From assembly GCA_030704615.1 (NCBI GenBank), contig CM060731.1:37448001-37512000 (forward strand): 64,000 bases of DNA, given 5' to 3'. The position numbers and the translations under genes were made by a program. The DNA comes from Takakia lepidozioides. Its lineage: Eukaryota > Plantae > Bryophyta. Position 1 is the stretch's first letter; each line of letters begins with the position of its first letter. The notes beneath the pieces are model-generated. The model did no database searches, was not told the DNA's origin, and worked only from the letters and a program-made list of their open reading frames with translations. This document shows, one piece after another, positions 16,611 to 50,500 of this stretch.

Positions 16611-18631
16611 GCCAAGACCTCGGACCTTGGTTGCTGGAAATGTCCAGGCAAAACCTCATCATACCAGGTAACTGCTGCCTGGAAGTATTACAAGTTGCTT
16701 TTAATTGTCTATGGGAAGCTCAAGAAGATTGTGCAATGCTCCCTAAATTATAGTAAGATTGTTGCAAAAACAAGAAGTGCCACCTTTAACTGTTAAGTGT
16801 CCGGGCCCATTTTCACGACATGTGAGAAAAGGACCCCGGGCCACTAAAAAAATTTATCTCCCAGATTTCTAAGTCCTGTAAAAGTGGACATTGAATTTAC
16901 CCCAAACTATCACCTCAAAAAATTTCAGCCATATCCAACTGCCAGAGGAGAAGATTATAATATGCAGATGTGCCCCAAGAAGAATCCTTCCTAAAAATGA
17001 AGACCATAAAAAAACCAAGAACTTTACCAAATTTGGGCAATGTTTTCCTTGCATGATATGAGAGTCTTGGGAATTGTGTACCTCAATTGATGCCACACCT
17101 TCCCTGAAATTTTCGTTTTTTTCTGACTTGTTTCTGTGTGGGCTGCTTTGTACTCACAAATTGGGGGGTCAAAAAATCCATTTTGAAGCGGGCAAACCAA
17201 CATTTGAGCTTTGAAAATTACGTAGGACACATCTACCGTCCAATTCTCAATCGCTCTGGTCCATGTCATCATTGCATGCAAAGGTTGTTGTAGAAAAAAA
17301 TTCAATCCAATTGGGAAATGTTTTAGGCTATTTTTGGGCCCTACCCAGTAATTCCCTGCCCAACCTATATTTTGGCCTGCAGCCCTACTGTATTTCCTAC
17401 TCTAGCCCTTGTATCTAGTGGGTTTTGAGACCGTTTCACCACTCATGTGGGATGAAGTTAGCTTGTGGACCCCACCATTGGGGCGGGTCCCTTTTAGAAT
17501 CCCACGCCCAGATTTGGTGCCACCCCTCCTTCCACCAGCACATATCCTCTACCCACCCACCTTTAAACTATATTTGAATTTTTCTCACTTCTCTAGAATT
17601 GTCCTTTCTAAGTTGGATGGGATTTTAAATTTGATTTTGATTTTGATTTTAAATTAATAATTTATAACTATTAAATTACAATTTGAGGGGCTGGAATTGC
17701 GTAGGAAAAATCTGCAATCATAGATATTGTAAATGCAGGGGGTTGTGACCTCCAGGGGTCGCCTTGCGCCGGTATTGCGATGGTATTGTGATGCCCCAAC
17801 AGGTCTGCGATGGCGGGGAATCGCAATACTGCCTTTTCTGTGTCTTTGCAAAGGTCATAGCAGAAGCTGAATGGATCCATTGTTGCAAATCTTTTTAGTC
17901 CTCCTTCTGTGCTACAATATAATAGGTCTATCTTGCATGTGGGAGACCGTGATCAACCCGGGCGGCCTTATTGTTAAAGACAAAGGGCAAAGAAGAGGGG
18001 GTGGGGACACTAGGAAATGAAAAGGGAAGGGCCTTGGGATTAGAGGATTGAGGGTAGATTGCTTTGGCAATGGCTTTGGCAACATTGTTGTCTTTCACAC
18101 CAATTTCGAAGATTCTTTCTGTTGCATCGAGATCATGGTAACCAAATCGATTGAAGGGTTTCCAGGGATAAGTCTTGGTCAGCACTTGTAGAACAAGAAC
18201 CATGTCTTCCAACATTCTTGCCCTCGTACAAAAACTCAACAATCCTAGAGTTACTTTTCGAGTCACAACTTCATTAAAATCATTCTTAGATCGCCACACC
18301 TACAAAGGATTTTTTTCATGGATTTTTCATTAATCAATCATAGAAATAAGCTACATGCTTGTACATGTACAATCAATCGAAGGGATGGGTACAGTTATGT
18401 GCGAGAATTATTATGTAGCTTTGATTACGTGTCTAATCGACTTGAACATCATCATCCGGAGTTTCTTCGTCCTCATCAAGTTGCAAGTTTTCTTGCTCAT
18501 CAGAGTCATTGTCATAAACGGCCTGGTCACCAAAAGGCACATCTGAATCATTTTCCACCTCGGTTTCGTAATTCCTCTGGAGGTTACAGTGGGTCACAAT
18601 ACGGTACTCTATCTCTCTCTCGTGCTAGGTC

Positions 18632-20436
18632 ATGCCGCGTGTTTATCGACGTGTCACGCTTGAGGATTCGTTGTCGGCTGTGCCACAACCACCTGCCGAG
18701 GGCGAGACAACACGTTCGCCTCGTCTACGAGTTAGGCGGCATCGCCATGTCCGCACAGCTTTGCCCCCACGGCCACCACCCCGAGGTCGTAGGCCGCCAA
18801 GTCCAGAGGCACGAGCCCCGGGGAGACCCCGCCGGGACCGCCACCCCAAGATTGAGTGTTGGTGCAGTTGGTGTTGGGCACGACTACCGGTTGGGAGGAC
18901 CACACCGATGATGCGGCGACCCCATGTTGTGCAAAAACATTACGCCAAGTACGAGATTGCTGATGCAGCAAAGGTAAGTCGTCCATATATATTCTCACGT
19001 ACTCCTCAATTAAAAGTACTATATCTAATGAAACCTCGCGTTTGTGAATTGAGTATTGATACATTTCATATCATGCATCTTGCAGCCCCGTCTTGATGTC
19101 CAAGCTCGCAATTTTTTTGCTGAAGAGGCATACCGATGCGGGTTTCTTCCTTCTTACGAGCCCTACCCCGTTCCGGATGTGAACATTTTTTTCTCGCAAC
19201 ATGACGTAGATGCAGTTTGTGAGGTAGCGGGGTACGATGCGTGTTTTTTTATTTTTGGGCACCGGGCTAGGCGCTTGTCATCTACACACACACATTCGTC
19301 ATCCTCGACATCGGCACCCCCATCATCACCATCATCCGCATCGTCCGTTCCTTCTATTGTAGATGGTCTTTCCTCATCATCATTGCCATCCGAGGTCCCT
19401 CATACCGACCGGCTACGTGTCCCTTCCCCTCCATTGCCGAGACCACAGCCGCCACCGAGTCCGAGTTCGACATCCTCGACATCAGCACCCCCATCATCAC
19501 CATCATCCGCATCGTCCGTTCCTCCTATTGTACATGTTCTTTCATCATCACCATCACCATCCCGGCCAGTACTACCTCCACGCGAGATCCCTCATACCAA
19601 CCTACGTGTCCCTTCCCCTCCATTGCCGAGACCACAGCCGCCACCGAGTCCGTATCCGGGTCCTCCGGCAGAACCCGGATGGATCCCACCACCTTTGGGG
19701 ACTGTGTATGACTGGGACCGATGGATCACTAGGTTCCCACTCCGGGAGAAGGGCCCCCGAAGTGATGGACGGGCGCCACCCCCTAGGAGAGGTGGACCAA
19801 AGTTGTTTCGCACGATTGGTCCGCGCCTTCGTCGGCCTGATCATGACGGCACCATACGTCATCGTGGTGCTAGGGAGCTATTCACAATGGGAGTCCAACC
19901 CCATTTCTACCAATGTCTTGTGCCTTGTCCAGTTCCGATTCCCGAGGGTGAGCCTTTTCTTTTTTGGGGTCGCATGTATTGCGTGATGGAGGCAATGGAC
20001 CCTAGTTTGGGTCGCAGACTTTTTTTTTATGGAGGATGTAGTTTTGGGGGGAGAAGAGGATTCTGTGGATTTGTTCCCATATTTTGGGCCGAGGTATACC
20101 CACCGGGAGTGGCAATTATTGCAGACACACGGCCTTGGGTCCTTGATCCATCTTTACATCTTTGTTGTGAACGACAATGATGTAAGGGCGAAAAATTTGG
20201 GCCGCAAAGCCCATATTTATTGTGACGGAAACCCCGATGTGTACGGCAACGTGGCTGGGCTCATCAACAGTTCAGTTACCTTACCGCCGGGCCACACCGC
20301 CAACGGGTTTTGGGATGAGCGCCATGACGGGGATAGTAGATTGGACCCTAACATCACCACTGTTGTGATGACATATGCAAGGAGGACTATTAGGGCTGGA
20401 GAGGAGTTGTTTGTAGAGTATGACTTTAGGCGTTAG
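18632..20436 (+). CDS. Transposon-associated SET-domain protein (N-terminal CxCxxC...H Zn motif, Pro/Ser-rich linker, C-terminal SET domain); exons 18632-18973, 19086-20436, with one extra base in T9 run 20020-20028
   Basis: Removing one T joins the 19056 and 20029 ORFs into GRRLFFMEDV..PYFG...IYCDG..YGNVAGLINSS...ANG...TYARRTIRAGEELFVEY*. This follows the SET motif order GxGLF, YxG, D..GNxxRFINHS, AxRxIxxGEELxxDY. A 112-nt phase-0 GT-AG intron lies at 18974-19085. Confidence 0.75.
19299..19655 (+). repeat. Tandem duplication (~170-185 bp unit) encoding the Ser/Pro-rich linker
   Basis: SSTSAPPSSPSSASSVP...PHT..LRVPSPPLPRPQPPPSP occurs twice with near nucleotide identity. Confidence 0.85.
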
Positions 20437-20750
20437 CCGACTTTCATCATGTGTAGATGGACGTAGGAAGACATTTTGTACATTGAGGTGGCTTCCTCCA
20501 CCGTGTATATATATACATAGGCATTGATGTGTATTTGGATGCAGTTTTTCATGCTATATTCAAGGGAGTTTGGGTGGACGTTATATGTGAATTTGGGTAT
20601 TTTGAATTATATAGTGTCTCCTTCATGTGGTGAAGCAATGTATGTATTCCCCTCGTGTGTATAATGTGTACTTTGGGTTTTATCCTGTATGATATTGAAC
20701 AACGCCATGTATGGGAACTAATAATGACATGGTTGTTTTTGGCATCTTAG

Positions 20751-23700
20751 GATGCCGGCCACAACCCCACGACGTTAATTCATGAAGTTCATGATCTTGT
20801 CATGAACCGGGATTTTGTTCCTTCGGAGGGGGGTGTGTATCAAAGGGACCCGACCCCGTCTGAAATGGCGGTCTCCGATGATGAGGACAACAATGACAAT
20901 GGAATTATGCATGAGGATGTGGCAGCAATGGAGGACCTCTTAATGCATCAGATGGTAGATGAGGACACAGACTCTTTGAATGACATGGAAAAAGAAGCCA
21001 AAACTCCCTTATACGAAGGGGCCAAAGTGAGTAGACTTTCAACCATCTTGTTGTTGCTGAATTTGCAAATCCGGTTTGGCATAAGCAATGTGGGTATGTC
21101 CGCCATAATGCGGACTATTGCGGACTACATCATTGCCCCACATTTGAAGCCGAGAATGCCACAATCAAGAAAAGAGGCAAGAGCAGCCTTGGATGTTGTG
21201 GGGATGGGCTATAAGATTTTTCATGCATGTCCATGTGATAAAACCCTGTACTACAGAGAGGATGCGAAACTCACCAAGTGTCCAAAGTGCAACAAAGACC
21301 GATATCGGGATGATGTTCAAGGGAAGAAAGCCCCGCGCAAGGTATACCCGCGCCACAATACACTTGTATATTGCATTCTATCTTTTTGCAACCGCTACAA
21401 GACGTAAGGTTTTACTTAGAGATATGAATGACACTGATTATGATATGGGGCCGACATGGGGATGGTGCCCAAAAATGCATTACTTTCCAATCATCCCGCG
21501 ACTGCAGGCACACTACCGAAGCCCCTCATTGGCAGAATTGATGAGATGGCACGCCTCGCATCGGAGCCCCCCGGGAAAGATGTGCGGGCCACAAGATTCA
21601 CAAGCATGGAGGCATACTGAAGAGATGTGGCCTTTTCTCTTGGAGGACCCACGACATGTCCGCCTCGGCTTCTCCTCAGATGGGGTCAACCCATTCTCTG
21701 TCCAGTCATGTAGTCATTCCACTTGGCCGGTGACCATGGTGAATTACAACATCCATCCGTATCTTTCAATAAAAAAAAACCATATCATGCTAGCTGCCAT
21801 TGTACCGGGCGAGTGTTCTCATTTCATGCGTAGTAAGATGTGTAATTCATTATGAAGTATAATTAGCATGGTGGAGCATTGAAACAATTAATGGCGTGAA
21901 TGTCTCATAGGGAAAAAACAAGTGAAAGACATGGACACGTACTTGCGACCTCTAGTTGATGAACTGAAGGAGTTATGGAGGGGGGTCCCGGCATTGGATG
22001 CTTCACTTGACCCTATGGCCGGACAATCTTTTCAGATGAGAGGCATCTTGCTTTGGACAATGCATGATTATCCAGGTATATTATGTTCCCCATGAGAAAC
22101 CCGCGTACATTTACCTGTCAAGGGATATTGATGAGGATTGGGATTGATTGAAGTAGCGGCGACAGTCTTATGCACCGTAGTGGGGTAGATGCACATGGAA
22201 ACTTTTTGTCTTTCCTAATGTGGCGGAATGTCTACAGGACTTACTGTTTGCTTGGGGTTGAGCACTAAAGGGTACCACGCATGCCTGCATTGTGGTGATG
22301 AACTTAATGCACAAAGCTCCAGCAATCTTCGCAAGATGGTGTATCCCAACTACCGCAAGTTTCTTCCTATGAGCCATCATTGGAGAAGAAGAGACAAATA
22401 CTTGTTTGATGGCAAAGTGGAGTTACGTCCCCCACCTGTGACACCATCCGGTCACTTTTGGGAAGACCGATGGAATGAGGCCCATCCGGAGGGTTCCGGT
22501 GAAGTGGAGGTACCCGGCATGAAGCGACTTTCAATCTTCTACGAGTTGTCATATTGGGCGGTACATATTCCATAAAAACACCATCAATATTGCTATGCAT
22601 GCATGTGATATTGCATGTTTTGTATGATTTCCATTGTCACTTTCATGACAAAATAGACGTGTACGAATTAGTGGGTGGGGATATGTGTAGGACTTGAAGA
22701 TTCGTCATCTTCTAGATCCCATGCATATTGAGAAGAATGTTTGCTCGTCTTTTTTTCGTGTTCTTCATGGCACGCCGGCAAAGAAGGGAGTGGCTGCGAA
22801 AGGAGATTATCTCGGTGTAAGAAAGGAACTTGAGGAGCAGGGTCGCATGCCCCATCTATGGGCCGAAGAAAATGGTGTGGACCCAAAGGGTGTTGTACGG
22901 TGGAAGTATAGGCGTGCACCTTGGCAATGGACAAAGGAAGAATACAAGAAAGTGATAGCCACCATAGGAGCTGTCCAAACACCAACTGGTTATGGGTCAT
23001 CCCTCCGTATGAAGTTCAACGAAGACGGGGACCATGGTTTGAAGTCTCATGACTACCACAATCTATTGCAAGACATCTTGCCCATTGCAGTACGTGGGAC
23101 ATTGACTCCCGAGGTTCGCGAGATAGTCTATAGATTGGGAGCATTGTTCCGGTGGATTTGCTCCAAAGAGCTGGAGGAAGCGGACTTTCCACACATGAAG
23201 AAGGAGGCGGCGGTGGTCATGTGTATATTAGAGATGCACCTTCATCCCTTTTTCTTTGATATCTAAGTGCACTTGGTAGTGCACTTAGTGGAAGAGGCTT
23301 CAATTGTCGGCCCCGTTCATTCTCGGTGGATGTACTACCTTGAGCGATACATGAAAACTTTGAAAGCACATGTAAGACAAATGACACACCCGGAGGGTAG
23401 CATGGCGGAGGGGTATACATTGCAAGAGGCTATATTCTACTGCATGGAGTACTTGGCAAGGGTGGATAAGGAAGCCCCTCCGATGTGGAAGGAAGATGAG
23501 GATGTATGAACCAAGGACATCGTTTTGCCCAAAAATTCAAAGAGGGTAAAATTACCCATCATGGTGATTAACCAAGCGCATGAGTTCATACTGAAGAACA
23601 CCCCATCCATACATGAGTGGGAGGCAAGATACAATAACCTTGTTCAACAACGACAGGAGGAGACGGTTGCGTGGAGGCGGAACCATGCAAGGGTGACTAC

Positions 23701-24538
23701 ACGCGCTCCGCGAGCAAGGGGCCGACGTGGGAATGTGTCTTCACGATAATTGCCCATGGAATTGCAGCCTCTAAGTTCATTCCGCCATTGGCTTCGGACT
23801 GAAGTAGAGGATAGCATTGCAAAAGGTGAGGTGGTTTCAGATTTGGTGCAAGACATTGCAAGGGGCCCCTCTCAATTTGCGACCTCATACACGGCGGTTT
23901 GGGTTCATGGTCGTCATTTCCGCATTCGTGTTCTTGACATGAAGCGCAAACAACGTTTGATTCTGGTTTGTGTGCCTCATATTGGCAAGACTCCGTGTGG
24001 GGCAGGGAAGATACATGACCTACCATGAGCACACTCAACTACTTTGGAGAGCTTGAGAGCATACTCCAACTTCAGTATACAAGGCACCAGCCTCTTATCT
24101 TCAAGGCAAGTTGGTTCCAGCCACATCTTGTGGGGCCATCCGCAACAATAATGGAAGACGAGTGTGGTTTCATGCGCGTCAATACAGATAGGCTCGAGTC
24201 TACTCATCGTCCCTCCGATGAGCCTTTTTCATGGCCTTCAGACATGGAGCAAGTGTTCTTCTCCGGATCAGGAAATTGGAAAGTGGTTGTGCATGCTCAG
24301 CCAAGAGGAAGACGTATCTATCATGATCGGGGATCTATATGGGGCGAGGCAAATGCGGAGGAGGAAGAGACTGGTCATGATGACGCTGATGTTGGCCAAG
24401 GTTGGATAGAGGGGGTACAAGAGAATGATGACGGCCTGGACAATGCATCCCGAACCCTATACGATGAGGCTCCATCAGATGCGGATGTTGGAGAAATAGA
24501 TGTAGACACGGAAGACTGCGTGAGGCGCCCAACTGCAG
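20751..24538 (+). pseudogene. CACTA TnpD/Tnp2-like transposase pseudogene (Transposase_21, DUF4218 and DUF4216-like regions), multi-exon
   Basis: Motifs HACPCD..Y....CPKC...RY, YFPIIPRLQ, MRWH, DGVNPF...HSTWPV, YLRPLVDELKELW, WTMHDYPG, LDPMHIEKNV, LKSHDYH, HLVVHL..GPVHSRWMY..ERYMK..PEGSMAEGY, YFGELESI, DEPF..P..MEQVFF. GT-AG introns present. Premature stops at 23264, 23507 and 23747, plus frameshifts. Confidence 0.93.
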
Positions 24539-24578
24539 GTAAGCAGCCATGCATTTCTGATCTTCATAGTGAGATATT

Positions 24579-24680
24579 TCAGTGAGAGTTTGGGTTCCAC
24601 AGAGTAGACAGTGGAATCCCCACGGATCTCATAGTATATAGGACAATAGAAGAAGTGTTCTTCAGTTTCAATTTCATAGA
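24579..24680 (-). mobile_element. Short non-LTR retrotransposon (LINE) 3'-end fragment
   Basis: Minus strand EIETEEHFFYCPIYYEIRG resembles the ETxxH...CP..Y..IR part of the C-terminal CCHC region of LINE ORF2. Confidence 0.5.
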
Positions 24681-24704
24681 GAGAGAGGGAGAGAGAGAAG
24701 AGAG

Positions 24705-25432
24705 TGTCGCGGCCCTTTGCCTTGAGGGCAGGGGGGTCGGGACACATGAGGAGCTGCCCCTGTGGTGGGGGCAGCGGCAGCGATAGGTATGGGGGGGTTG
24801 AAGCACCCTTGAGTGCCCAAGGCACTCAAGGAGGCAGAGGCGCTCACTAGGTGGAGCCCCGCACACCGGGTTGCGGTGGGGGTGGCTCCACAAGGGGTGG
24901 TGGTAGCTTAGCGGAACTTAGTGGGGGTGGCATAGGACTCACCATGGGGGCGGAGACCTCGTGGTGGGAGTCGTGGGGAGTCTTGGGACTCATCACGGTC
25001 CATAAGGGCCGTGGTGAGTGGGCCAAGACTCACCGCGACTCATCACCGGGAGTCGAGGGTTTTCGTGGTGGTTCGCCATAAAATGGCATGGCTGGTTGTG
25101 AAACCCCCGCGGACAGCTACAGAAGTATATATAGGGAGTAGTAACCCCGAGAACGGTGCAAGCCCGTTGGTGACCAAAAACTAGTGAGTAAGCGAGCGAG
25201 CCGGAAAGCGACCAAAGAGTGGGGAGCTGTTCCGGATTGCCATCTACCAAAGGGAATTCTCCTAGTCCCAATTAGGTGGAGGGTTTAGAGGGAAGCGAAG
25301 TGGGGACCGTTATGTCCCGGTGAGCAGCCGAAGCTCCAAGTTGGTCGGGCGGCCAGGTTGGGAGTCAGGCGCGCGCATCAAAGCGAGTAACTATGACTTG
25401 AAGGGGAGCTTACCGAAGTGAGGTGCGCGACA
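24705..25432 (+). repeat. 5' LTR (728 bp)
   Basis: Near-identical to 30944-31663; TG...CA ends with a 7-bp inverted repeat; TATA-like element at ~25126. Confidence 0.95.
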
Positions 25433-25434
25433 CT

Positions 25435-25446
25435 TGGTATCAGAGC
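25435..25446 (+). promoter_or_regulatory. Primer-binding site complementary to initiator tRNA-Met
   Basis: TGGTATCAGAGC 2 nt downstream of the 5' LTR. Confidence 0.92.
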
Positions 25447-25487
25447 TTAGAGTTCAGTACGCAATCATCCTTGGGATTGGCCTCATC

Positions 25488-28400
25488 ATGGGGTCGGGCA
25501 AGCCGAAGCGAAAGCGGAACGGCCCAAAAGATGATGATCCCGGTGAGCCCGATGGGGGCGGCGTGTCACCGAGGCGGCCGTTTGAGGAAGCGATGCATGT
25601 TTCCTAAAACGAGGCCGCCCAAGAGCGGGAGGAATCCGAGGAGTCGGAGCCCGAGGAATCCTTGAGAGCTCCGACAAACCAAGAGATGCCTCCCATGCCG
25701 GCAGCCTTTGGGAAGGGTTGTTGGCGCAGTTTGGCGGGACGCTGAAAGATGTGTTGAAGGCGGCTAATGCCACCTCCGCTAAGGCAAAGTTTAAGGTGAA
25801 GCCTAAGGAACCCGGCACCTTCGAGGGCGTCCAAAATCGGAAGGCACTCAACACCTGGCTCTTGGAGCTAGAGCAGTACTTCCGGGCAGCCAAGTTGAGT
25901 GACGAGGATCGGGTGGAAGTGGCTCCCACCTATTTGAGGGGCTATGCTCAACAATGGTGGCAGAGAAACGCCTTCACGACCGAGGTCCAAGCCCGGAAAC
26001 CTTGAATTGGAGTGGGTTCAAGGAATTGATGAAGAGACAGTTTGTGCCCCTCAACACGTCCTGGCTTGCCCGGACAAGATGAGGAATTTGAAGCAAACAG
26101 ATGACATTTGGGGGTATGTCCAGGCTTTCAATGTGCTGTTGCTCGAAGTCGCGGACATGGCAGAACCAGAAATGGTCTTCAACTTTGTGGCGGGACTGGC
26201 CCCATGGGCCAGGCGGAAGTTGGAGGAGAAGCCACCCAAGACTTTGAACGAGGCTATTGAGAGGGCTGAATGTTTCTCAGATGTCCCTAGGGGTGAAAGA
26301 CAAGGCCGTACGGAGCTGAACCACAAGAAGATTCGGCGGGAAGGTGACTCCTTCCGACCGGAAAAGAAGTGGGATAGGCCACGCGGCAAAAATGGCACGT
26401 GGAAATCGAAGGGAGGGCCTTCACACGTCAAGGCGGCACCCGGTGCTTCGAAAGGAAAAGCGGGTGGAGCGGCTTATGGCGGACAGAAGGCGACCTTTGA
26501 TGGAGTGTGTTTCAATTGCGGGGAGCCCGGGCACATGGCCAAGAAGTGCACGAAGCCCCTGCAATTGAACATGACTCAGGCGACCACGGAGCTGTCGGAA
26601 GATACCATCAGTCGCTTGGGGAAGCGGTGGTCGCCAGGACTTGCAAGGTAGGCAAATTTTCTTGTGAGTTGTATCAGGAAACTGGCGCCTTACGAAAAGG
26701 GAGTCAGTTATTGTTCGTGGATGGGATAATATCCGGAACTAATGTGTCGTTGTTGGTGGACACAGGAGCGTCGCACTCCTTCATGACACCGGCAACGGCA
26801 CAAAAGCTGGGACTCCCGACAAGTGACGTGGGGGCCTCTATTGAGGTGCGTTCTGCCAAAGGAGAACCACAGTTGGCGACAAGGTTGGCGATTGATGTTC
26901 CTCTTCAACTGGGGAGTTAGGAGGGACGTGAGAACTTCACCATCTGCGAGATCGATGGAGTGGATCTCATTTTGGGGATGACCTTTTTGAGCAAATCCGG
27001 AGCGGTCATAGATGGCCGCAAGAGAGTAGTCACGCTGCCATGTGGAAATGGTGGCGAGGTTTTACGAGTGTCTGAAACGCCCAAATCCGTGGGAGGGCGA
27101 ATAAACCTTCTGTCAGCAAAGAAGTGGGCCGTGGAGGAGGCACACGAGCCCCAGTTTTTGCTTTACGTTAGAGAAGTGAAAGGAGAAGGCGATGGGGAGC
27201 CGAGCCCAGATTGGATCAAGGGGATTTTGGAGAAATACCAGGATGTGATGCCGGAGGATTTACCAAGCGGCTTGCCACCGCGAAGAGGAGTTGACCACAA
27301 GATTGAGGTGATACCGGGATCGGAACCGCCTGCCAAGGCGCCCTACCGGTTGAGCCACAGAGAGTTGGTCGAGCTGAAGACTCAGCTCAAGGATCTAATG
27401 TCAAAGGGGTACATCCGGCCGAGTAAGTCACCTTACGGAGCCCCGGTGCTATTTGCAGACAAGAAGGATGGGACGCTGCGGATGTGTGTCGATTACAGGG
27501 CTCTGAATAAGGTGACTATCAAAAACCGGTACCCTTTGCCAAGGATCGACGACCTCTTTGATCGGTTGGCAGGAGCGAAGTATTTCAGCCGGATCGACTT
27601 GCGCTCCGGCTATCACCAAATTCGGGTGGCGGAAGGAGATGAGGAGAAGACCGCGTGCAGGACAAGGTATGGTTCATATGAGTTCTTGGTGATGCCTTTT
27701 GGGCTCACCAATGCACCAGCGACATTTAGCACGTTGATGAACAGCCTTTTCCAGGAGTGGTTGGATGACTTTGTGATCGTGTACATCGACGACATCTTGG
27801 TGTACTCGAAAACGAAGGAGGAGCACCTGGAGCACCTCAGAAGGGTGTTCCAAAAATTGCGGGAAGGGAAGCTGTATGCCAAAGCTTCAAAGTGCGAATT
27901 CGGGGTCACAAAAGTGGAGTTCCTGGGGCATGTGATTACACAAGATGGGATCAAAATGGATGACAGAAAGGTGAGGGCGATCTTGGACTGGGAGCCTCCG
28001 ACTTCGGTCCCGGGAGTGCGATCCTTCCTAGGACTCGCCTCCTATTACCGGAAGTATGTGAGAAATTTCGCCAAGATCGCGGGGCCGCTGTCGGACCTTC
28101 TGTGTAAATCCAAAGTCTGGGTATGGAACACATTTTGTGGCCAAGCTTTTGCTGAATTGAAGCAGCGGATGACGGAAGCTCCAGTCTTGAAAATCCCGGA
28201 GTTCGATCGTCCGTTTGAGATTCATACAGATGCATCGGACTTCGCGATTGGGGTGTTACTTATGCAAGATGGACGTCCAGTGGCTTACGAAAGTAAGAAA
28301 CTGAATGAAGTGGAGCGACGGTGGCCGACGCACGAAAAAGAGATGAAGGCGGTGGTGCATTGCCTTGAGCTCTGGCGCCACTATGTTGGTTCCAACCCAG

Positions 28401-30050
28401 TGAAGGTGTTCACGGACAATGTCACGGTGAAGTATTTTGCCACGCAGCCCAAGTTGTCCCCAAAACAACTTAGGTGGCAAGATACTTTGGCAGTGTTCGA
28501 CGTGGATATCCAGTACAAATCGGGACGGGACAATGTGGTGGCCGATGCTTTAAGTAGAAAGCAGCAGCTCTTGTTGGTGTACAAGGGCGAGACGGCGCTC
28601 CAAAGGAAGATCCGGAAGGCTTGCCGGAAGGATGAGCTGGCGAAGTCCGTGATGCAGGACTTGAGGATGGGGGTTAAATCGCAGTTCCACTTGCAAAATG
28701 GACTGCTCCGGTATAAGCAAAAACGTCTCTACGTGCCGAAGGGAGGGATCAGAGATAGCTCTCTTGAGAGAATGCCATGATAGCCCGCTTGCGGGCCACG
28801 GCGGAGCCAAGCGCACTGCGGCACTCTTGAAGAAAGAGTATTTCTGGCCCAAACTGAGGGAGGAGGCAGGAGGAGGAGGCAAGTATGCATGCACACATGC
28901 CAACAAAACCGGAGCGAGTACAAAAAGCAAGCGGGGCTGTTACAACCCTTGCCGATTCCAGAGGGGACTTGGGAAAGCGTCTCGATGGATTTCATGACTG
29001 CTATGCCGCTGTCAAAAGGATTCGATGCAATCATGGTGGTGGTAGATAGGTTCAGTAAAATGGGCCATTTCATCCCCACCAAGGAGACGGCAACGGCGCA
29101 GGAGACAGGGCGACTTTACTTCGCCCACGTCTTAAAGCATCATGGAGTCCCGAAGGATATTGTCTCGGACCGCGATCCAAAGTTTACGAGTAAATTCTGG
29201 AGAGCACTTTGGAAGAAGATGGGGACGAGGCTGAAGATGAGCACCGCCTTCCGACCTACGACGGACGGCCAAACGGAGAGTGAATTCCGTAGTGAAGCAA
29301 TTCTTGCGGAATTACGTGTCGGCAGACCAATCAGACTGGATGGAACACTTAGACGCGGCAGAGTTCTGTTATAATAACACAGAACACTCCGCAACGGGAG
29401 TTTCCCCTTTCGTATTGGTCTATGGAAAAGCACCTCTGGTGCCGACAAGTTGGGCCGCCCAGGACGTTGAGGAACCGGCAGTAGCGGCGGTACTGGAAGA
29501 AACGCGAGCGTTTGTTGAAGCTCGCAAAGTACAATATTGCCAAAGCTAGGAAACGGTATGAAAGGCAGGCGAATCGGAAGCGGAGGAAGTGAAGTTTGAG
29601 GCAGGCACAGAGGTCTGGTTGAACATCAAGAATTTCCGACTACCTCCGGAAGTGAGTCCGAAGTTCGTACCTCCGTATGCGGGACCCTTTCGCATTCGGA
29701 AGGTTATGAATGAGGATGTGTATGAATTGGAGCTGCCGGCAAACAGCAAGGTGCACCCAGTATTCCATGTCTCCCTTTTGAAGCCTTACTTCAAAGATGA
29801 AGCGCGTCCGAATCGGCATCAAGTGTTGCGTCCGCCACCTATGCTGTTGGATCATGAAAATGAACCTGAGTACGTGGTAGAGGCAATACTTAAGTCGAGG
29901 AGGTTCAGGAACCGAGAAACGGAGTATCTCGTCAAATGGAAGGGCTATCATCATGTGGAGGCATCTTGGGTGCGTGCCTCAGAAATGGGAAACGCATCCG
30001 AGGCGGTTGCAGCTTTCGAAGGGCGACCTCAAAAGCGGAAGAAGCGTTGA
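25488..30050 (+). pseudogene. gag-pol polyprotein, disrupted (Gag with CCHC knuckle, aspartic protease, RT, RNase H, integrase, chromodomain)
   Basis: CFNCGEPGHMAKKC; LLVDTGASHSF; [33 protein letters not shown]; [10 protein letters not shown]; CHDS..AGH.G, SMDF, IVSDRDPKF, TDGQTE; GPF motif; YVVEAIL...YLVKWKGY...ASW. Split by several frameshifts and stops (e.g. TAG at 26918). Confidence 0.95.
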
Positions 30051-30943
30051 TGGGGACATCAACCTTGGAGCGTGGGGGAGGAAATGCATGCTTAGCCCGG
30101 TTTAGCTAGCTCAGGAATCCGATTGCAAAAACTTGTATTGTACAAAAATTTGTTATAAAGGAAATGGGTTCCAAATATTGTGCGTCCTATTGTTGATGCA
30201 TGGTGTGGTTGGCTAGTGTGTAGAATGCATGCTAGCTTACAAAAGTGGGAGAGGTAAATTGGGTTAATCGTGTGTTTGCGCAGTGCCGAAATCGGGTGAC
30301 TCCCATCCAAGAGGCAAGGAAAACTGTGCCTTCTTTGGGAGTTCACGTGCTAGTGCGCACCTGGCGCGTGCGCGTACTATAACTGCGCTACCGAGGGGGT
30401 TGCCTTGTAGTGCGGGCTAACGCGGAAGCTACGTGCTTCCGTTCACGTACTATAATCGTGTAGCCTCGGGACGAAGTCGTAGTGCGGCTTCGGCGTGTTC
30501 CCGTGCCTCAGGCCAGCATTCCAAGGCGGACCCAATTGTAGTGATTGGGGCGCACGGTTGGTTCAAGGTTATCTTCCTAGTCAAAGAGGGTTCCAGGTGA
30601 ACCCTTGCTCAAGGTGATGCCAAAAGCGGCATCATGAGCGATCGCAAGCAATGTTGTTGCAGTAAGGCGATTCGATCCTCGGGGAGGATCGTTCCTTGGC
30701 CTTGAAGTAGGCCAAGAAGAGTGCACTGGGAAGAGCTGGAGAGGCTCCACCCTTGGCCGGGACTTGGAGGAAGTCGGCCGAACTAGCTAGTGGAGAGTAG
30801 AGTCAAGTGTGGGGTTTGGTTCTTTACCATGGGACGCCATGGTGCGGAAACAAACTCCTTGATGTGGGACGCCACACTTGGATGTTCGTTTCTCAAAAAT
30901 GGACAAGTCGATAAGGACATCGACTCCTGTTGGTAGGGGTGTG

Positions 30944-31663
30944 TGTCGCGGCCCTTTGCCTTGAGGGCAGGGGGGTCGGGACACATGAGGAGCTGCCCCT
31001 GTGGTGGGGCAGCGGCAGCGATAGGTATGGGGGGCTGAAGCACCCTTGAGTGCCCAAGGCACTCAAGGAGGCGGAGGCGCTCACTAGGTGGAGCCCCGCA
31101 CACCGGGTTGGGGGGTGGCTCCACAAGGGGTGGTGGTAGCTTAGCGGAACTTAGTGGGGGTGGCATAGGACTCACCATGGGGGCGGAGACCTCGTGGTGG
31201 GAGTCGTGGGGAGTCTTGGGACTCATCACGGTCCATAAGGGCCGTGGTGAGTGGGCCAAGACTCACCGCGACTCATCACCGGGAGTCGAGGGTTTTCGTG
31301 GTGGTTCGCTATAAAATGGCATGGCTGGTTGTGAAACCCCCGCGGACAGCTACAGAAGTATATATAGAGAGTAGTAACCCCGAGAACGGTGCAAGCCCGT
31401 TGGTGACCAAAAACTAGTGAGTAAGCGAGCGAGCCGGAAAGCGACCAAAGAGTGGGGAGCTGTTCCGGACTGCCACTACCAAAGGGAATTCTCCTAGTCC
31501 CAATTAGGTGGAGGGTTAGAGGGAAGCAAAGGGGGACCGTTATGTCCCGGTGAGCAGCCGAAGCTCCAAGTTGGCCTGGGCGGCCAGGTTGGGAGTCAGG
31601 CGCGCGCATCAAAGCGAGTAACTATGACTTGAAGGGGAGCTTACCGAAGTGAGGTGCGCGACA
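30944..31663 (+). repeat. 3' LTR (720 bp)
   Basis: Direct repeat of the 5' LTR with only a handful of substitutions and indels; preceded by a weak purine-rich tract TGGTAGGGGTGTG. Confidence 0.95.
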
Positions 31664-32070
31664 GAGAGAGAGAGATTTCCCTTTTTTTTTGGGGACCTGC
31701 ACAAAGGAGAAGGAGAGAGAGGGAGAACGAGGGAGAGAGAGGGAGGGAGAGGGATAGAGGGGGGCCAAGAAAATAATAAAAGAAGTAGGGGGGGGGGTGA
31801 CTGAGCAGCAGCAGCTCAGCCCCTCTCTGTTTTTTTTTTTCTTTTGTGAGCAGCAGAGGGACAGGGACAGATGGAGGACAGAGACGGAGAAATGAGGGAA
31901 AAAAAAAAAAAAAAATGGTGGGGGGGGAGTGACTGAGCAGTTGCTGCTCAGATGCTAGTGCTACTCAGTCACTCCCCCCCCACCTTCTTTTTTAGTTTTT
32001 TTTTCCCTCCTCACTGCCTCTTTCTCCCTCTCTCCCTCTCTCTCCACATCTTCATGGGACAGAGGGAAAA
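31664..32070. repeat. Low-complexity array with G-run + AGTGACTGAGCAG motif (part 1)
   Basis: GGGGG(A)GTGACTGAGCAG and its inverse, GA tracts, and CTCTCCACATCTTCATGGGACAGAGGGA shared with 36533-36561. Confidence 0.75.
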
Positions 32071-36100: not shown

Positions 36101-36164
36101 AATTTTTCAATTTTTTCAATTTTCTCAAAGATGGAAGTCGGGACGACAATTCATAAACCTAGTT

Positions 36165-37440
36165 TCCAGAGGGAGAGAGAGGGAGAGAGAGGGAAAGAGA
36201 AAAAAAAAAAAAAAAAAAAAAAAAGGAGGGGGGGGGGGGGGGGGGAGGGGAGGGGTTGACTGAGCAGCAGCAGCTCCCCCCCCCCCCCCCTCCACCTGTT
36301 TTTTTTTGTTTTTTCCGTCATCACTCCCTCTCTCCTCTCTCTCCACATCCTGATGGGACAGAGAGAGAGATGCAGGAAAAGAGGGAGAGAGAGGGAGAGA
36401 AGGAGAGAGGGACTGTTGAGGGGAAAAAAAAAAGAAAAACAAAAGGTGGGGCGGTGGGGGAGTGACTGAGAGTAGCTGCTCAGCACTCCCAACCCCCCAC
36501 CTCCCCCCCCCCCCCCCCCTAAACAGTCCATTTCTCTCCACATCTTCATGGGACAGAGGGAGAGATGGACAGAGGGACAGGGGAGAGATGAAAAAAGAAG
36601 AAGATGAAAAAACAAAAAAAAAATGGTGGGGGGGGGGGGTGGTGACAGAGTGAGAGTGCGGAGAGAGAGAGGGAGAGAGAGAGAGAGATGAGGGAAAAAA
36701 AAATAAAAATAAAATAAAATGTGGGGCGGGGGGGGAGTGACTGAGCAGTTGCTTCCTCTTTCTCCCTCTCTATCTCTCTCCACATCGTGATGGAACAGAG
36801 GGAGAGAGGCAGCGAGGGAGAGAGGGAGAGAGAGGGACTGTTGAGGGGGAAAAAATAAATAAAAAATGTGAGGGGGGGGGGGGGGGGCAGCTACTCCAAT
36901 CACTTCCCCACCCCCCACTGTTTTTTTTTTTTTTTCCCCTCAACAGTCCCTCTCTCTCCACATCCTGATGGGACAGAGGGACAGCGAGGGATAGATGAGG
37001 GAAAAGAGGAGAGAGGGAGAGAGTGGGAGAGATGAGGGAAAAATAAAAAAGAAGGTTGGGGGGGGGGAGTGACTCAGCAGCTGCTGCTGCTCAGTCACTT
37101 CCCCCCTCCACCTTTTCGTTTTTGTTTGTGGAATGGTGGGGGGTGCTGAAAGCAGCTTGCTGCTGCTGGTCTTAGCCCCCCCCCCCGACCTTCATTTTTT
37201 GGTTTTGGCAATGGTGGGGGCCACTGAGAGGGTGCCTGCTGCTACTCTCAGTCCCCCCCATTTTTATTTTTTTATTTTTTGGAATGGTGGGGGGCTGACA
37301 ACAGCAACAAGTGCTGGTGCTCTCAGCACCCCCCCCCCCCCCCCTCTTTTCATTTTTTGCTTATCAGCAGAGAGAGAAAGGGGGAGACAAAGATATAGAG
37401 ACATAAAGATAGAGGGAGAGGAAGAGAGAGGAAAGGGGAG
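36165..37440. repeat. Low-complexity array with G/C homopolymers and GTGACTGAGCAG motif (part 2)
   Basis: Multiple direct and inverted copies of the motif, CCACATC(C/T)T(G/T)ATGGGACAGAG, long G/C/A runs and GA microsatellites. Confidence 0.8.
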
Positions 37441-41666: not shown

Positions 41667-42150
41667 TCATTGCAAACTTCTCAAGATTGCAATTTCACCC
41701 AACCTGCCAGCTGCAACATACATGTTCGATAACAACGCCTTCATTTTGCTACATGTAAAGATGATAGTATTCGACTTTAAATTTTCCTTTTGCATCCCGT
41801 CGAATAGGTACAGGGCATCCTTACGACAACCACGGTGCGCATACCTGCAATCGTTGCATTCCATGACACCTCAGTTCAATCACCCATCCGATCAAACACT
41901 CGTCTTGCATCCTCGATGCTCCAGCATTTGGCAAACATGTCCATTAGTGTATAGTTCAGAATGATATCTTGCACAATTTCAGCTTTCATAATGTCCAAAT
42001 GTACATCTTTTCCACTTTCAAGGGCTACCACGCTTGCCTAAAAAGAAAACGAATGTGACATAGTTGTAATAAGTCTTCGCCTCTTCTCCTCTTGCAATTA
42101 TCGCACTCCATAACTTCACATGTCGTTTAGCCATCGAACAATACCTGTCG
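41667..42150 (-). pseudogene. PLS-class pentatricopeptide repeat (PPR) pseudogene fragment
   Basis: Across frames: VWSAIIA..GEEA, ALESGKDVH, TLMDMFAKC.SIEDARRVFDRM, VSWNA.I, DALYLFDGMQKE, and E-domain-like LLSNMYVAAGR. Many stops and frameshifts. Confidence 0.75.
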
Positions 42151-42795: not shown

Positions 42796-42859
42796 ATTCC
42801 TTTTCACATGTTCTCAGTAGTCACATCTCCTTGATCAACTATGAGCTAAAAATGAATCT

Positions 42860-43690
42860 AACGTGGAGGTAGTACCGGCCGAGATGGCAGGGATGGCGAT
42901 AGTGATAAGGAAAGAACATGTACAACATGAGAAATGGAAGATGGGGATGATGGGGGTGGCGATGTCGAGGATGACGAATGTATGTGCGCAGGCAGCAAAC
43001 GCCTGGTCCGGTGCCCAAAAATAGAGAAACACGCATCATACCCTGCTACCTCACATACTGCATCTATGTCATGTTGCGAGAAAAAAATTGTTACATCCGG
43101 AGGGGATGGGCCTCGTAAGAAGGAAGAAACCCGCATCGATATGCCTCTTGAGTAAAAAGATTGCGAGCTTGGACATCAAGACGGGGCTGCAAGATGCATG
43201 ATATGAAATGCATCAATACTTAATTCACAAATGTGAGGTTTCGTTAGGTATAGTACTTTTAATTGAGGAATACATCAGAAAGTATGAGGATGACTTACCT
43301 TTGCTGCATCAACAATCTCGTACTTGCGGTAATGTTTTTGCACAACATGGGGTCGCCGCATCATTGATCTGGTGCTCCCAGGCGGTAGTCATGCCCAACA
43401 CCAATTGCACCAACACTCAATCTTGGGGAGGCGGTCTAGGCCGGGTCTCCCCGGGGCTCGTGGCTCTGGACTCGGTGGCCTACGACCTCGGGGTGGTGGC
43501 CGTGGGGGCAAAGGGTGGACGTCATGCTCATCCTCCCGGACCTGCCCTGGGTACCTACGACGCCGCCTAACTCGCGGACGAGGCGAATGTGTTGTCTCGC
43601 CCTCAACAGGTGGCTGTGGCACAGCCGGTACATACGGTGCCGGGAGCGAATCCTCAAGCGTGACACGTCGATAAACTCGTACCATGACCT
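42860..43690 (-). pseudogene. Second, inverted, truncated copy of the 5' part of the transposon SET/Zn-finger gene
   Basis: MVRVYRRVTLEDSL...KIECWCNWCWA matches 18632+. It has the same 112-nt intron (43298-43187) and an exon-2 start PRLDVQARN...FFSQHDIDAVCEVAGYDACF. It ends before the SET domain and contains a stop. Confidence 0.88.
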
Positions 43691-44198
43691 ATACATGTAT
43701 GAGTAGCAATTGACTTAGAAAAAATTACAAAATCAAAAACAAAAACAAATATTTGGACTAAAACATTCGAGCAGGAACCCAAGACTTCATGTAGTACATT
43801 CGACATACATATTTTGGGCTACACTTGCAGCTCTAAACACTTGTGGCGCCGTCGGTGGTTGATTGTGATGCACGTGGCAAGGTCCAGGGTTTCTTTCTTG
43901 ATTGGAGGCGGACGTTAGTTCAACGTCCAATTTCATTTGTCACTCTACAAGTGTAAGACTTACCCCCTGTGCATTACTATTTCCGGGTTACAATTGGTGC
44001 ACCTCAAAACACAGACCTAGCAATGCTGGGGGCCTAAAACTCCATAGGACGTACCCCTTCAGGACCAAGAACAACAGGTCTCCGCAAATCCGACAGATGC
44101 CATTTTCCCTGCAAGATAAATCACAAAACTGCTGCTACTTCTTTTGCTCAAATCTTCCATAGTTAAACATTCACCCAAGAGATGGGGCCTGGAGGAGT

Positions 44199-47599: not shown

Positions 47600-50500
47600 T
47601 TCAAATGTCATGATGCCCAAGTGCAAAGGGACTCATATTGGTTGGCTCCTTGGAGTGGGAATTCGAGGAGATGGGCCTGCATCAATCTGCAGATGCCCAT
47701 GCTAGCATGAAGGGTCAGCAATTTCTGCTCAACGTTTGAGTTCCAGCCTTCAGTTTCTTTGAATGTGATGGTGGGGGTTGAGAATCTCCTCAGGATCATC
47801 TGGGGTCATCAGGGTTCCGTTGCTTTACTTCCTATATCATGATCATAGCTCACAAACAGTGGGTTATCTTGGCTCCTCGGGGTTCCTGTGTGCCTGCTTC
47901 CCTGGTCTTGCCACTCTTTTTGGACATTGCTGCAAGAGGACATCACAAATTTCCCCCTCTCCGCAGCTTGCATACAAGAGAGTAAGTAGTGGGCTACAAA
48001 CTGACGACGTCATGGTACCAGGAATAGGCCACATTCAAGATCCGAATTTGACAACAAATGCATCCAGTGGCAGTAGTATTGATTCTTCAATCCAATTGGA
48101 GCCATGATTGAACCTTCAAGGGCTAGTTGTGGCACTCACTTAAGTGGTGCAGTTTTCAATGATGCCATCTGTCAAATCGATGTGATACTGATTTTATCCC
48201 CTTTGTCAAAATGATGTCAGTTCCAATAATGTTGTCCCATGTAGGCAACACAAAGGTAAGCCTCTAAGCAGTTTGACGGTTTAAGGTTTTCTCATGTGAA
48301 ATTTTGTTTAATTCCGGAATGGATCCCCAGTAGTAGCAGAGAAAATTTATTACCATGTTCTAGCAAATCTGAAATAAATCATCCTAAGGTTTATGTACCC
48401 AGATTCGTAACTTGACTCGGTCATCAATGCTCAGTTGTTGATTACACAGTCCACGGTGACAGATTACATGCCGTCCGTGTGTCCACATCAGAGTGTCCAC
48501 ATCAGATTCTGCTCTGTAAACAATGATCAATAGATGCCTACCCGACAGGGGGTAGTACCATCTGCCAGGGAAAGTGGCATTACACCCGCTGGCTTTTGGC
48601 TCTTTCTATCACACAAAGTTTTCCAAAGTGTGAGGCTCATGTGTTGGCGTCATTACTAAAGCTGGGTTTGTTAATCTGATTTTGCACGAAGAACCTCTTT
48701 ACACAGTTACTCCCTCAGTCAGTCCATTACCTACTTCAGAAGTTTTCTTAGAAAAGGAGTTCACTAAGCTGGCTTCTGTAGAGATCTGATCCATCCTTGC
48801 TGAGGAGAAAAGCACTATCCTCCACATCAGCATGAGGGCAATTCATTCGATGCCTGTGGACAACAAACTAAGGAAAGCTTAGAACTGAGCTCTGAAATCC
48901 ATTCAGAAAGTCCAAGACTTGTTGATCCAACTACCCACGGATTTTTACATATTTTTCCACAAAATAACATAAACTACAAAATAAAGTCATGGCAGGGTAA
49001 TGCGACTAAAGACGTTGATCAAAACAGCTTGCTGCGACATCACCATCTATTCATCTGCAACAATGGTATCTAATCTTGCAACCAAGATTGACATGGTTTT
49101 TAGGATCACTTGCCATTTCCCTACCAGAGACTCTTTTACTTTTCCATGAGTTCGAAACATGACAACAATGAGACTCCTGCCTCTTATAAAAACATAACAA
49201 GGAGACAAGTGCTCCAAGACATACATACCAATCGAAATGAGTGTCACAACAGACGGCATTGAAGATCCGCTTCAGACCAGCTCCTTTCCTGTCCAACCAA
49301 TATAATAACCTGAATGAATTTTGCTCTCCTAAAAGATGTCCAAATATCACCCACGAATTCAGGCTCAAACACCCCATCTAACATGTAAACTTTGCCTTGA
49401 TAGTTTCCAGGAATATCTGTATCGAATCTAGTTTGACCAAAACCCACATGAGAGAGACCTCAACTTTGAAGAGCAGGTTTACCAACGTTACACCACTGTA
49501 GCGATGAACAGCACCATTTAAATGATCTAATCTAGGCAGTCTAGTCATAACAGCAATCTTGTCATAACAAAGTACAATGGTCTGTTGGTAGAGAGGAAAT
49601 CTGGGAAAGGAGAGGTGAAAGATGGTTACCAAGTCGCATTGTACATGCTGTAGTACTTATCAAATGCTTTTGTCATACAGGAATTGCATGCAAACAGTTT
49701 CCTCATATCTACCACTGGGCAGGGCCCTTTGAAACATTTGACCTGCAGCAGATCATCTTTTAGTGAAGTGAGGGAACTCAAGAAAAGAGAAGGCAAAGAG
49801 AGACAGTCCTCTTGCATAAAACTACCCACCACACCTCTAGTAAGCATGAAAAGGAGAAAAAGGGCTCAAATGAAAGTAGTTACACAAGTGATGAACGTGC
49901 CCGTACCAAGCGATGAAGCTTAAAGGAATAAAGTTGGCGGTGAGAAGGGTTCTCCTGGAGATGAGTTGTCAAGTGTCCCAAACTGCCAATTTACCCATCA
50001 CAAGTTCAATTTCTCACTCTCTACTGCTCCCTATAACAGGGGGCTGGGTCTACCACCATAACGCTACAACAAGCAATTACTGAGAACAGACACATGCACA
50101 CTGTCTCTCTTTTGGCTCTTCAGACGCTGAACCTGTCTGGTGCATTCTGATGTGGGTTCTTGTTGTGCTACTTTGCCCATTATAAAAAAAAATTCTGTCT
50201 CCCTTTTTGTGTTCCATCCAAGTAAAGTTCGAGGTCACAAGACTACAGCAAGTATGGTCTAATGACCTTATCTTTCTCTCCACCACTCTCCCTTTTTGTG
50301 CTCCATCCAAGTAAAGTTCGAAGTCACAAGACTACAGCAAGTATGGTCTAATGACCTTATCTCTCTCTCCACCACCCACCTGTCACAAAAGATGGCACTA
50401 CAAACAAGGCACATGCACAAGTTGGAGCGAATCCCACACTTGCTACACTCGGAACTGCTGGCACTAGCCTCAATTTGCTTGCATCTACATATCATCACAT

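Follow-up and report, generated by a model that had tools for sequence, protein, structure and literature searches.

Does a DNA transposon of a land plant carry, as a part of itself, an exon for a SET-domain protein? The question is raised by a stretch of 64,000 nucleotides from the bryophyte Takakia lepidozioides (GenBank assembly GCA_030704615.1, contig CM060731.1, positions 37,448,001 to 37,512,000, forward strand; hereafter the window, numbered from its first letter). Here a gene ending in a SET domain, the fold of lysine methyltransferases, occupies positions 18632-20436 directly upstream of a CACTA-type transposase. An initial interpretation of the letters alone, referred to below as the sequence-only reading, had tentatively assigned this gene to the transposon. 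The answer reached here is that the SET exon is built into the transposon family and inherited with it, a conclusion to which we attach a probability of approximately 0.85. It is carried by the identity of the domain, by the recurrence of the SET-transposase pair and by the multi-copy nature of the stretch.

Identity of the SET domain

There is next to no doubt that the SET domain is real. The 135-residue piece encoded by 20029-20433, searched by itself, scores 23.8 bits against the Pfam SET profile (PF00856; cut-off 22.4 bits, E 6e-5), and tblastn of intact relatives against the window yields an E value of 1e-14 at 20020-20433. Among six relatives, P0003, P0012 and P0004 score 25-28 bits, and P0015, P0024 and P0040, which include the proteins of Riccia and Calypogeia, fall just under the cut-off at 18-22 bits. 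The fold was modeled on the intact relative P0004 rather than on the broken window protein, the pieces of which align to P0004 throughout. The AlphaFold model, derived from a 40-sequence alignment, has a mean pLDDT (predicted local distance difference test score) of 86.6, with values above 94 over residues 50-220. Foldseek returned a SET match for it (E 1.6e-6), and comparison with SET8, Set1, MLL, EZH2, SET7/9, ASH1L and LegAS4 gave Z scores of 11.3-12.6 with root-mean-square deviations of 2.4-3.1 over 120-135 residues. Because all SET families tie at Z 11-12.6, the structure confirms the fold and cannot pick a subfamily, and a subfamily assignment by structure comparison was rejected for that reason. 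At the sequence level, the family profile matches LegAS4 over the whole domain with an E value of 2e-6, whereas MLL1, the best eukaryotic SET protein, is matched approximately 700-fold more weakly (1.4e-3). A language-model search ranked a bacterial "type III effector" cluster level with a plant cluster.

The nearly invariant columns of the family are GxG (as G-L-G), Y-x-G, N-S (N171 and S172) and the positions of the C-terminal E-L-x-x-x-Y, which in the window reads E-E-L-F-V-E-Y and includes the nearly invariant Tyr. The G-x-G cofactor motif is G-R-R in the window as opposed to G-L-G in the family; judging from the alignment, this is damage private to the window copy or its subfamily. At the N-H-S/C motif the Asn is kept and the His is replaced by Ser across nearly the whole family, while MLL1 has N-H-S and LegAS4 has N-F-S at this site. 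N-S-S is consequently a family trait and not decay, since Asn-Ser is nearly invariant and LegAS4 likewise dispenses with the His.

The sequence-only reading had recognized a SET domain without the cysteine clusters that flank it in many host proteins. All of the motifs that it quoted are found in the window pieces, no Cys-rich pre- or post-SET cluster is present in the window gene, and the Pfam search and structure prediction that it had proposed both agree with the assignment, the former above cut-off on the 135-residue piece and the latter as a SET fold of an intact relative. It had further suspected decay or catalytic divergence behind both unusual motifs; the suspicion of decay proves right for G-R-R and wrong for N-S-S.

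Replacement of the His in nearly all family members brings up the alternative that the protein is a catalytically dead adaptor or decoy, which binds the cofactor or a lysine substrate, such as a histone tail, and so blocks a host silencing enzyme or its substrate. The marginal Pfam scores, and the fact that the close relatives of such a candidate are known by sequence only, point the same way. It is nevertheless improbable: GxG, the Asn and the C-terminal Tyr are nearly invariant among members that are just 25-60% identical, and LegAS4, the closest solved relative, also lacks the His. LegAS4 is an active histone methyltransferase. For the intact copies of the family we would put the chances of methyltransferase activity at about even.

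The gene and its nine-T run

The gene opens with the ATG at 18632. Its first coding exon comprises 114 codons and ends in phase 0 at 18973, where it is followed by GTAAGT; the intron is of the GT..AG type, with an acceptor (...cttgcag) that ends at 19085, and the next exon opens in phase 0 at 19086. The linker portion of this exon contains an internal duplication (19295-19391 and 19466-19562, spacing 171 bp). From 19086 the frame is open for 314 codons until a run of nine T residues at 20020-20028; the remainder of the SET domain is encoded by the open reading frame (ORF) at 20029-20436, which lies in the +1 frame and has its stop at 20434-20436.

Alignment of the family reveals that the 61 residues before the T run form the N-terminal block (IP..EPF..WGR.W.V..S.LG..GLGLFA), and that the 135 residues after it resume at the very next block (EDI.V...LFPY.GP.Y) with no residue missing. 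The two window pieces are thus consecutive blocks, from which it follows that a one-base frameshift lies inside the T run and that the window copy lacks an uninterrupted reading frame. The claim of the sequence-only reading that a single extra T splits the SET frame is thereby confirmed, and the length of the run, which it had wished to see compared with reads, was examined in sequencing runs, all of them consulted as assembled contigs. In the same-organism DNA run T9 accounts for 2087/2167 of the contig depth, and is therefore not an assembly slip. T8 is found in one contig of this run and in the sole contig of a plant-metagenome run (1599 nt, approximately 98% identical), so that an in-frame version exists elsewhere. 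T9 is probably common to many copies; contig depth is a poor copy count, and no copy number was derived from the T9 and T8 depths.

The prevalence of T9 beyond the window copy, together with the perfect re-pairing that a nine-U run permits after a +1 slip, would suit a controlled slip site, at which transcriptional slippage or a +1 ribosomal shift yields a little full-length SET protein while most of the product stops 51 codons later. We regard this as very improbable, since relatives in other species have no such break, the same copy bears other inactivating changes (G-R-R and the transposase stops) and a single frameshifted master copy that spread would account for the depth in a simpler way. 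The depth of contigs is, besides, a poor guide to copy number.

Linkage of the SET exon to a CACTA transposase

Downstream of the SET gene and on the same strand, Pfam identifies Transposase_21 (PF02992; 85.6 and 47.6 bits), DUF4218 (79.8 bits) and, weakly, DUF4216. This is a transposase of the Tnp2/TnpD type, by which CACTA (En/Spm) elements are recognized. The SET protein itself has few relatives, only 29 among 1.84 billion representative proteins and none above 47% identity; these proteins are short and have their SET domain at the C-terminus. Protein searches for close relatives from the same organism, using the 135-residue piece and the 374-residue ORF at 19056-20177, and an exact-sequence look-up were all empty, which means that the protein collection contains no copies from this organism. 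In the same-organism DNA run, 5191 contigs fall on the stretch at 90% identity or more, the SET region included.

Linkage was judged on the relatives whose surroundings were readable. All of these lie directly upstream of a Tnp2 transposase and on the same strand (Table 1); the contig of a further locus, L007, ends in an acidic exon resembling the first transposase exon. Neighborhood and orientation are the same in 6/6 contexts, namely the window and five loci. Across these, SET identity and transposase-core identity are correlated (r = 0.68, from 15 non-independent pairs), which fits one old acquisition followed by co-inheritance. The liverwort relatives keep the SET gene beside the same transposase, and hence the SET gene belongs to the element, being a long-standing and constant component of the transposase transcription unit throughout the family.

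A competitor of this conclusion would be an independent host SET gene or pseudogene that adjoins the transposase by chance. No terminal repeats bracket the SET/transposase pair in the window, and the Riccia homolog is annotated as an ordinary protein-coding gene, as such an origin would have it; yet the neighborhood and orientation recur in every one of the six contexts, and the SET stretch is multi-copy in the organism, with a second fragment 24 kb away. A host gene is accordingly the least credible of the explanations considered, and we judge it extremely improbable.

Plant CACTA elements capture gene fragments. The SET exon could on this precedent be passive cargo, a host or foreign fragment captured once and useless to the element, and the observations that most contig depth in the organism keeps the frameshift and that the window copy is dead would agree with it. 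Against such an origin, open SET ORFs of 146-501 amino acid residues with catalytic-type motifs persist beside transposases that are approximately 40-70% identical, in at least two liverworts, in this plant and in several uncultured sources, and the position and splice phases of the SET exon are conserved. Survival of the ORF across that divergence renders neutral cargo unlikely, rather more so than a dead adaptor.

The assignment of the SET gene to a CACTA-type element and not to a neighboring host gene, made by the sequence-only reading, is thus upheld by the linkage and by the multi-copy stretch. That reading had also listed what would speak against it, namely no match to a SET profile or fold, homologs found only as host genes, or a consistent lack of the module in other copies of the family; none of these proved to be the case.

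Proposed splicing of a shared first exon

The same reading had described a gene of approximately 560 codons and two exons on the same strand upstream of TnpD. Its exon model is retained, but the gene is probably not self-standing: the first exon is preceded by an acceptor AG at 18627-18628 and resembles the transposase's own first coding exon. The SET exon probably lies within what would be an intron of the transposase gene.

Several contigs bear on this arrangement, some from a run here called RNA-type, a guess for which its spliced joints are the support. One RNA-type contig breaks at the acceptor at 18627 and continues upstream with 154 unrelated letters, whereas DNA contigs run through to 18568. 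Neither this 154-letter RNA leader nor the upstream DNA consensus from the reads was found in the window. As the RNA-type contig breaks at an acceptor AG that follows a polypyrimidine tract and lies five bases ahead of the ATG, an upstream leader exon is indicated, which has been lost from the window copy. A second RNA-type contig follows the genome as far as 18971, which is two bases away from the donor position 18973; its continuation is off the stretch. The first transposase exon (T1) opens in phase 0 after an AG, with a stop codon just before it and its first ATG some way downstream, at 20802.

Comparable signals are found in the relatives: a phase-0 acceptor precedes the conserved G-x-x-H-x-P start in L002 and L003, L007 has a phase-0 acceptor as well, and a phase-0 GT donor follows the zinc motif in L003 and L007. 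In the window, L003, L007 and L009 the zinc motif itself (C-x-C-x2-C...H) stands ahead of the SET domain, as it does in P0024; Riccia (P0015) has only H-C-x2-C...H. The first exon is reminiscent of the C-x-C-x2-C...H motif at TnpD N-termini; a profile search for the Transposase-associated domain (PF13963) in this exon gave no match. Upstream of the zinc exon, the relatives have clusters of short repeated motifs (ACGTAA/TTACGT in L003, 700-960; GGGAAGGGAAAGAGAAAGTT in L007, 230-360), which look like the subterminal repeats of CACTA elements.

From the placement and phases of these signals we rather favor a scheme in which the first coding exon would be shared by alternative splicing. A leader exon would be spliced to the first coding exon, which encodes the Arg-rich zinc-type motif; joining of the donor at 18973 to the acceptor at 19086 would give a protein of approximately 560 residues with an N-terminal zinc module, a linker and a C-terminal SET domain, and joining of the same donor to the phase-0 acceptor at 20751 would skip the SET exon and give the transposase. 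One transcript would thus supply several products, as in En/Spm.

Transposase and decay of the window copy

In the RNA-type run the transposase joints 21341>21472, 21807>21910 and 22072>22235 were observed, all of which keep the reading frame. After allowed offsets the second and third correspond to GC..AG and GT..AG introns, and the first is non-canonical in the window copy (GT..CA). The possibility that all frame changes in the transposase are frameshifts was therefore rejected, three of them being introns. In-frame stops are present at 23264-23266, within the conserved F-F-D-I-x-V-H-L motif, at 23507-23509 and at 23747-23749. A change of frame lies near 23860-24025, with indels near 23862 and 23947 relative to the copies in the reads. 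At position 23507 nearly all other copies have C where the window has T. Overall, the window has T where other copies have C in 47 places, and A where they have G in 43, which is the signature of C-to-T decay. The window copy is dead: it is 5′-truncated and has lost promoter and leader, its SET frame is broken, its cofactor motif is G-R-R and its transposase has at least three stops as well as indels.

Element boundaries

The copy extends over 18568-24585; similarity to other copies begins at 18568 and, in read contigs, falls off at 24495. This is probably a decayed, 5′-truncated member of a high-copy family of CACTA (Tnp2/TnpD-type) DNA transposons. A search of the window for CACTA terminal inverted repeats, seeded with CACT(A/G), gave no pair reaching 15/20, and a 35-nt inverted repeat of Riccia was rejected as a terminus on the ground that it continues beyond the CACT motif. 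With the window copy truncated, it is the conserved linkage and the repetition, and not any boundaries, that place the SET exon inside the element.

A metagenome contig that joins 24495 to the reverse strand of 18567 might suggest an inversion of 18568-24495. This was rejected, as the left flank is the tail of another transposase copy, which matches the contig better than the window's own diverged tail does. Downstream of the acidic tail of that copy (18300-18567, minus strand) is a 123-residue ORF at 17928-18299, also on the minus strand, with no Pfam match. One same-organism DNA contig joins 19637 to 21220 with six extra letters, and represents a deletion derivative that has no SET domain and has lost most of T1.

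Weighing the evidence

A number of results tell against the picture developed above. Relaxed searches for terminal repeats, in the window and Riccia and, with self-BLAST, in Calypogeia and Riccia, gave nothing convincing, and no target-site duplication was found at the window copy, which holds no element ends. The Pfam SET scores barely exceed the cut-off, and the His of the N-H-S/C motif is missing from nearly the whole family. The first coding exon matches no Pfam family at E values up to 10, nor does a search of the relatives P0015 and P0024 at E values up to 1 bring out a known domain for it. Among the contigs of the runs, no junction from 18973 to 19086 or to 20751 was seen. In Riccia the zinc motif and SET domain share one ORF with no equivalent GT donor, and the T1 acceptor is in another phase, so that the shared-exon scheme is not universal. 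Finally, the majority of T9 in contig depth may mean that the subfamily spread with a dead SET exon, contrary to a need for the enzyme in cis.

Neighboring features

The coordinates are collected in Table 1. A complete-looking retrotransposon with long terminal repeats (LTRs), which is not part of the CACTA element, has ORFs for gag with a zinc knuckle, protease, reverse transcriptase, RNase H, integrase and a C-terminal chromodomain. Its insertion point lies immediately 3′ of the transposase, which makes the retrotransposon younger than the CACTA relic beside it. The truncated second copy of the SET gene starts to resemble the main copy no more than three bases from the acceptor at 18627-18628. 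A 125-nt stretch following the transposase tail (24540-24664) recurs in inverted orientation, at approximately 80% identity, 35 kb away at 59361-59489; no coding similarity to transposase or SET was found in the latter region.

Elsewhere in the window, positions 31700-32060 and 36160-37440 contain GA-rich, poly-G and poly-C arrays with AGTGACTGAGCAGC in direct and inverted orientation, approximately 4.3-5 kb apart, which may represent a satellite or the termini of some other mobile element. A broken-frame stretch on the minus strand at approximately 41760-42000 resembles a fragment of a pentatricopeptide-repeat gene (V-S-W-N-A-x-I-A-G...L-F-D-G-M), and an 89-bp unit is present as two tandem copies, 97% identical, at 50198-50375.

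Table 1. Parts of the SET-transposase copy, other features of the window and loci of SET relatives. Positions are those of the window; L numbers denote loci elsewhere.
Feature	Position or locus	Strand	Basis
Leader-intron tail: polypyrimidine tract, acceptor AG 18627-18628	18568-18628	+	DNA contigs of the family reach 18568; RNA-type contig breaks at 18627
First coding exon: Arg/Pro-rich, C-x-C-x2-C...H-x4-H zinc-type motif, donor AAG/GTAAGT in phase 0	18629-18973	+	Sequence reading; same motif in relatives
GT..AG intron, 112 nt, between first coding exon and SET exon	18974-19085	+	Kept in truncated second copy
SET exon: Ser/Pro-rich linker, SET N-flank and domain from approximately 19860, T9 frameshift, stop	19086-20436	+	Pfam, family alignment, tblastn
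Non-coding spacer: 3′ untranslated region of SET isoform or rest of transposase intron; pyrimidine tract and AG 20749-20750 at end	20437-20750	+	Stop codon immediately before 20751
Transposase exon T1: phase 0 right after AG, first ATG 20802, acidic region, C..C...C..C motif, donor AAG/GTATAC	20751-21341	+	Frames; joint 21341>21472 in RNA-type contig
Transposase exons T2 (21472-21808), T3 (21911-22075) and T4 (22238-22560), encoding Transposase_21	21472-22560	+	Pfam; RNA-type joints
Transposase remainder: DUF4218, DUF4216, acidic tail	22691-24585	+	Pfam, frames
Acidic C-terminal tail and stop codon of another transposase copy, abutting truncation point	18436-18567	-	Similarity; metagenome contig joins 24495 to reverse strand of 18567
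Ty3/gypsy-type LTR retrotransposon, complete-looking; LTRs 24704-25177 and 30943-31410, 94-99% identical	24704-31410	+	Self-comparison, ORFs
Truncated second copy: first coding exon, intron, start of SET exon; 82-91% identical; premature stop; no SET domain	42856-43691	-	Self-comparison
SET relative upstream of transposase, Riccia sorocarpa (KAL3682317)	L001	same strand	
SET relative upstream of transposase, metagenome scaffold	L002	same strand	
SET relatives upstream of transposase, contigs from four runs of one study	L003-L006	same strand	
SET relative upstream of transposase, Calypogeia fissa	L008	same strand	
SET relative upstream of transposase, another metagenome contig, more distant family member	L009	same strand	

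Comparison with known systems

The sequence-only reading had named some non-plant Harbinger-type elements as transposons with SET ORFs, which was too narrow. SET genes have been reported in HarbingerS and MuDR elements of Phytophthora (Kojima and Jurka 2014, as cited in PMC12730594) and in Helitrons (as cited in a preprint on Bostrychia). They are also described in red-algal Plavaka elements of the EnSpm/CACTA superfamily, in which PAG2 is an N6-adenine DNA methylase fused to a SET domain (bioRxiv 10.1101/2025.02.11.637652). As in these accessory genes, the SET ORF of the present family stands beside a transposase in 6/6 contexts and is multi-copy; boundaries set by terminal repeats are not part of the basis of this comparison.

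Plavaka offers the nearest parallel by superfamily, its SET gene being likewise carried by the transposon and thought to modulate the chromatin of the element. PAG2 is, however, a separate accessory gene within a three-gene cassette of giant elements of 17-19 kb, whereas the host of the window family is a bryophyte-type land plant, and the SET domain there stands by itself after the zinc-motif exon, flanked by the opening coding exons of a TnpD of the plant type, one that has DUF4218 and DUF4216. No further Pfam domain, and specifically no N6-adenine DNA methylase of the PAG2 type, was found in the window pieces or their relatives. HarbingerS, MuDR and Helitrons are also DNA transposons that encode a SET protein besides the transposase; they belong to other superfamilies and hosts, and no shared-exon arrangement is mentioned in the descriptions by which they were compared, as given in the citing articles. 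In the literature searched, we found no account of a land-plant CACTA element with a SET exon, or of a transposase gene that has such an exon nested within it. The present arrangement, in which the SET exon is probably nested in the transposase gene of a land-plant CACTA element, is a variant of the transposon SET genes already published.

In the maize element En/Spm, TnpA and TnpD arise from one transcript by alternative splicing, and TnpA counteracts methylation of the element. The window family would have in common with it a leader exon, a single transcription unit and alternative splicing that yields a second protein. TnpA differs in being a DNA-binding protein with no SET domain, and the transposase ORFs of En/Spm lie in an intron of tnpA, whereas in the window family it is the SET exon that would sit within an intron, that of the transposase gene. 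SETMAR, the SET-mariner fusion of primates, likewise joins SET and transposase by splicing within one gene; there, a host SET gene captured a transposase and the result is a fused protein from a single-copy host gene, as opposed to a transposon-borne SET exon for which alternative products are proposed. The resemblance to VANC proteins, which are encoded by VANDAL (Mutator) elements, would be limited to function: VANC is an accessory protein from a transposon, thought to shield its own element from silencing, as the present protein may do. VANC is unrelated in sequence and fold, and acts through sequence-specific binding that leads to loss of DNA methylation, not as a methyltransferase.

The best match among solved structures by profile is with effectors of the LegAS4/RomA type (PDB 5czy, 8sr6 and 8swi); the structural alignment shows 24% identity. 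The two are minimal SET domains, and neither has Cys clusters or the motif-III His; LegAS4 reads Y-I-N-F-S and the family Y-I-N-S-S, in both cases followed by N-A-E-F/W-V-E. LegAS4 differs in that it is secreted by a bacterium as an effector and has ankyrin repeats; it stands in no transposon context and lacks the N-terminal zinc module.

Proposed function

Given the linkage of the SET exon to the transposon family, what might the protein do for the element? It would be a minimal lysine methyltransferase without Cys clusters, nearest by sequence to the Legionella LegAS4 type, and its most likely service to the element would be to methylate either the transposition machinery or some protein of chromatin. 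The N-terminal module that it would have in common with the transposase could guide it, and the most plausible benefit would be to counter silencing. That the protein in fact has an anti-silencing role is a tentative suggestion, and on balance doubtful. A more specific scheme, that of a self-targeted writer, is less probable still. In this scheme, one zinc module would be joined by alternative splicing either to the transposase or to a LegAS4-like SET domain, both products would be sent to the ends of the element, and the SET isoform would set a lysine mark that keeps the element transcribed or competent for excision. The SET domain has its nearest solved relatives among bacterial effectors that remodel host chromatin, and one SET lineage would then comprise a plant transposon module and pathogen effectors alike.

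Significance

Transposons with chromatin enzymes of their own are rare, and attest directly to an epigenetic arms race between element and host. A function of the present protein as writer or decoy against silencing is plausible. The window copy is inert, and its value is that of a dated, decayed specimen. The affinity with LegAS4-type sequences bears on the origin of the "eukaryote-like" SET enzymes of bacteria. If intact copies are active, the family would constitute a simple system for learning which lysine mark is to a transposon's advantage in its own chromatin, with the advantages of a small SET domain free of accessory Cys clusters and of hosts among the transformable bryophytes.

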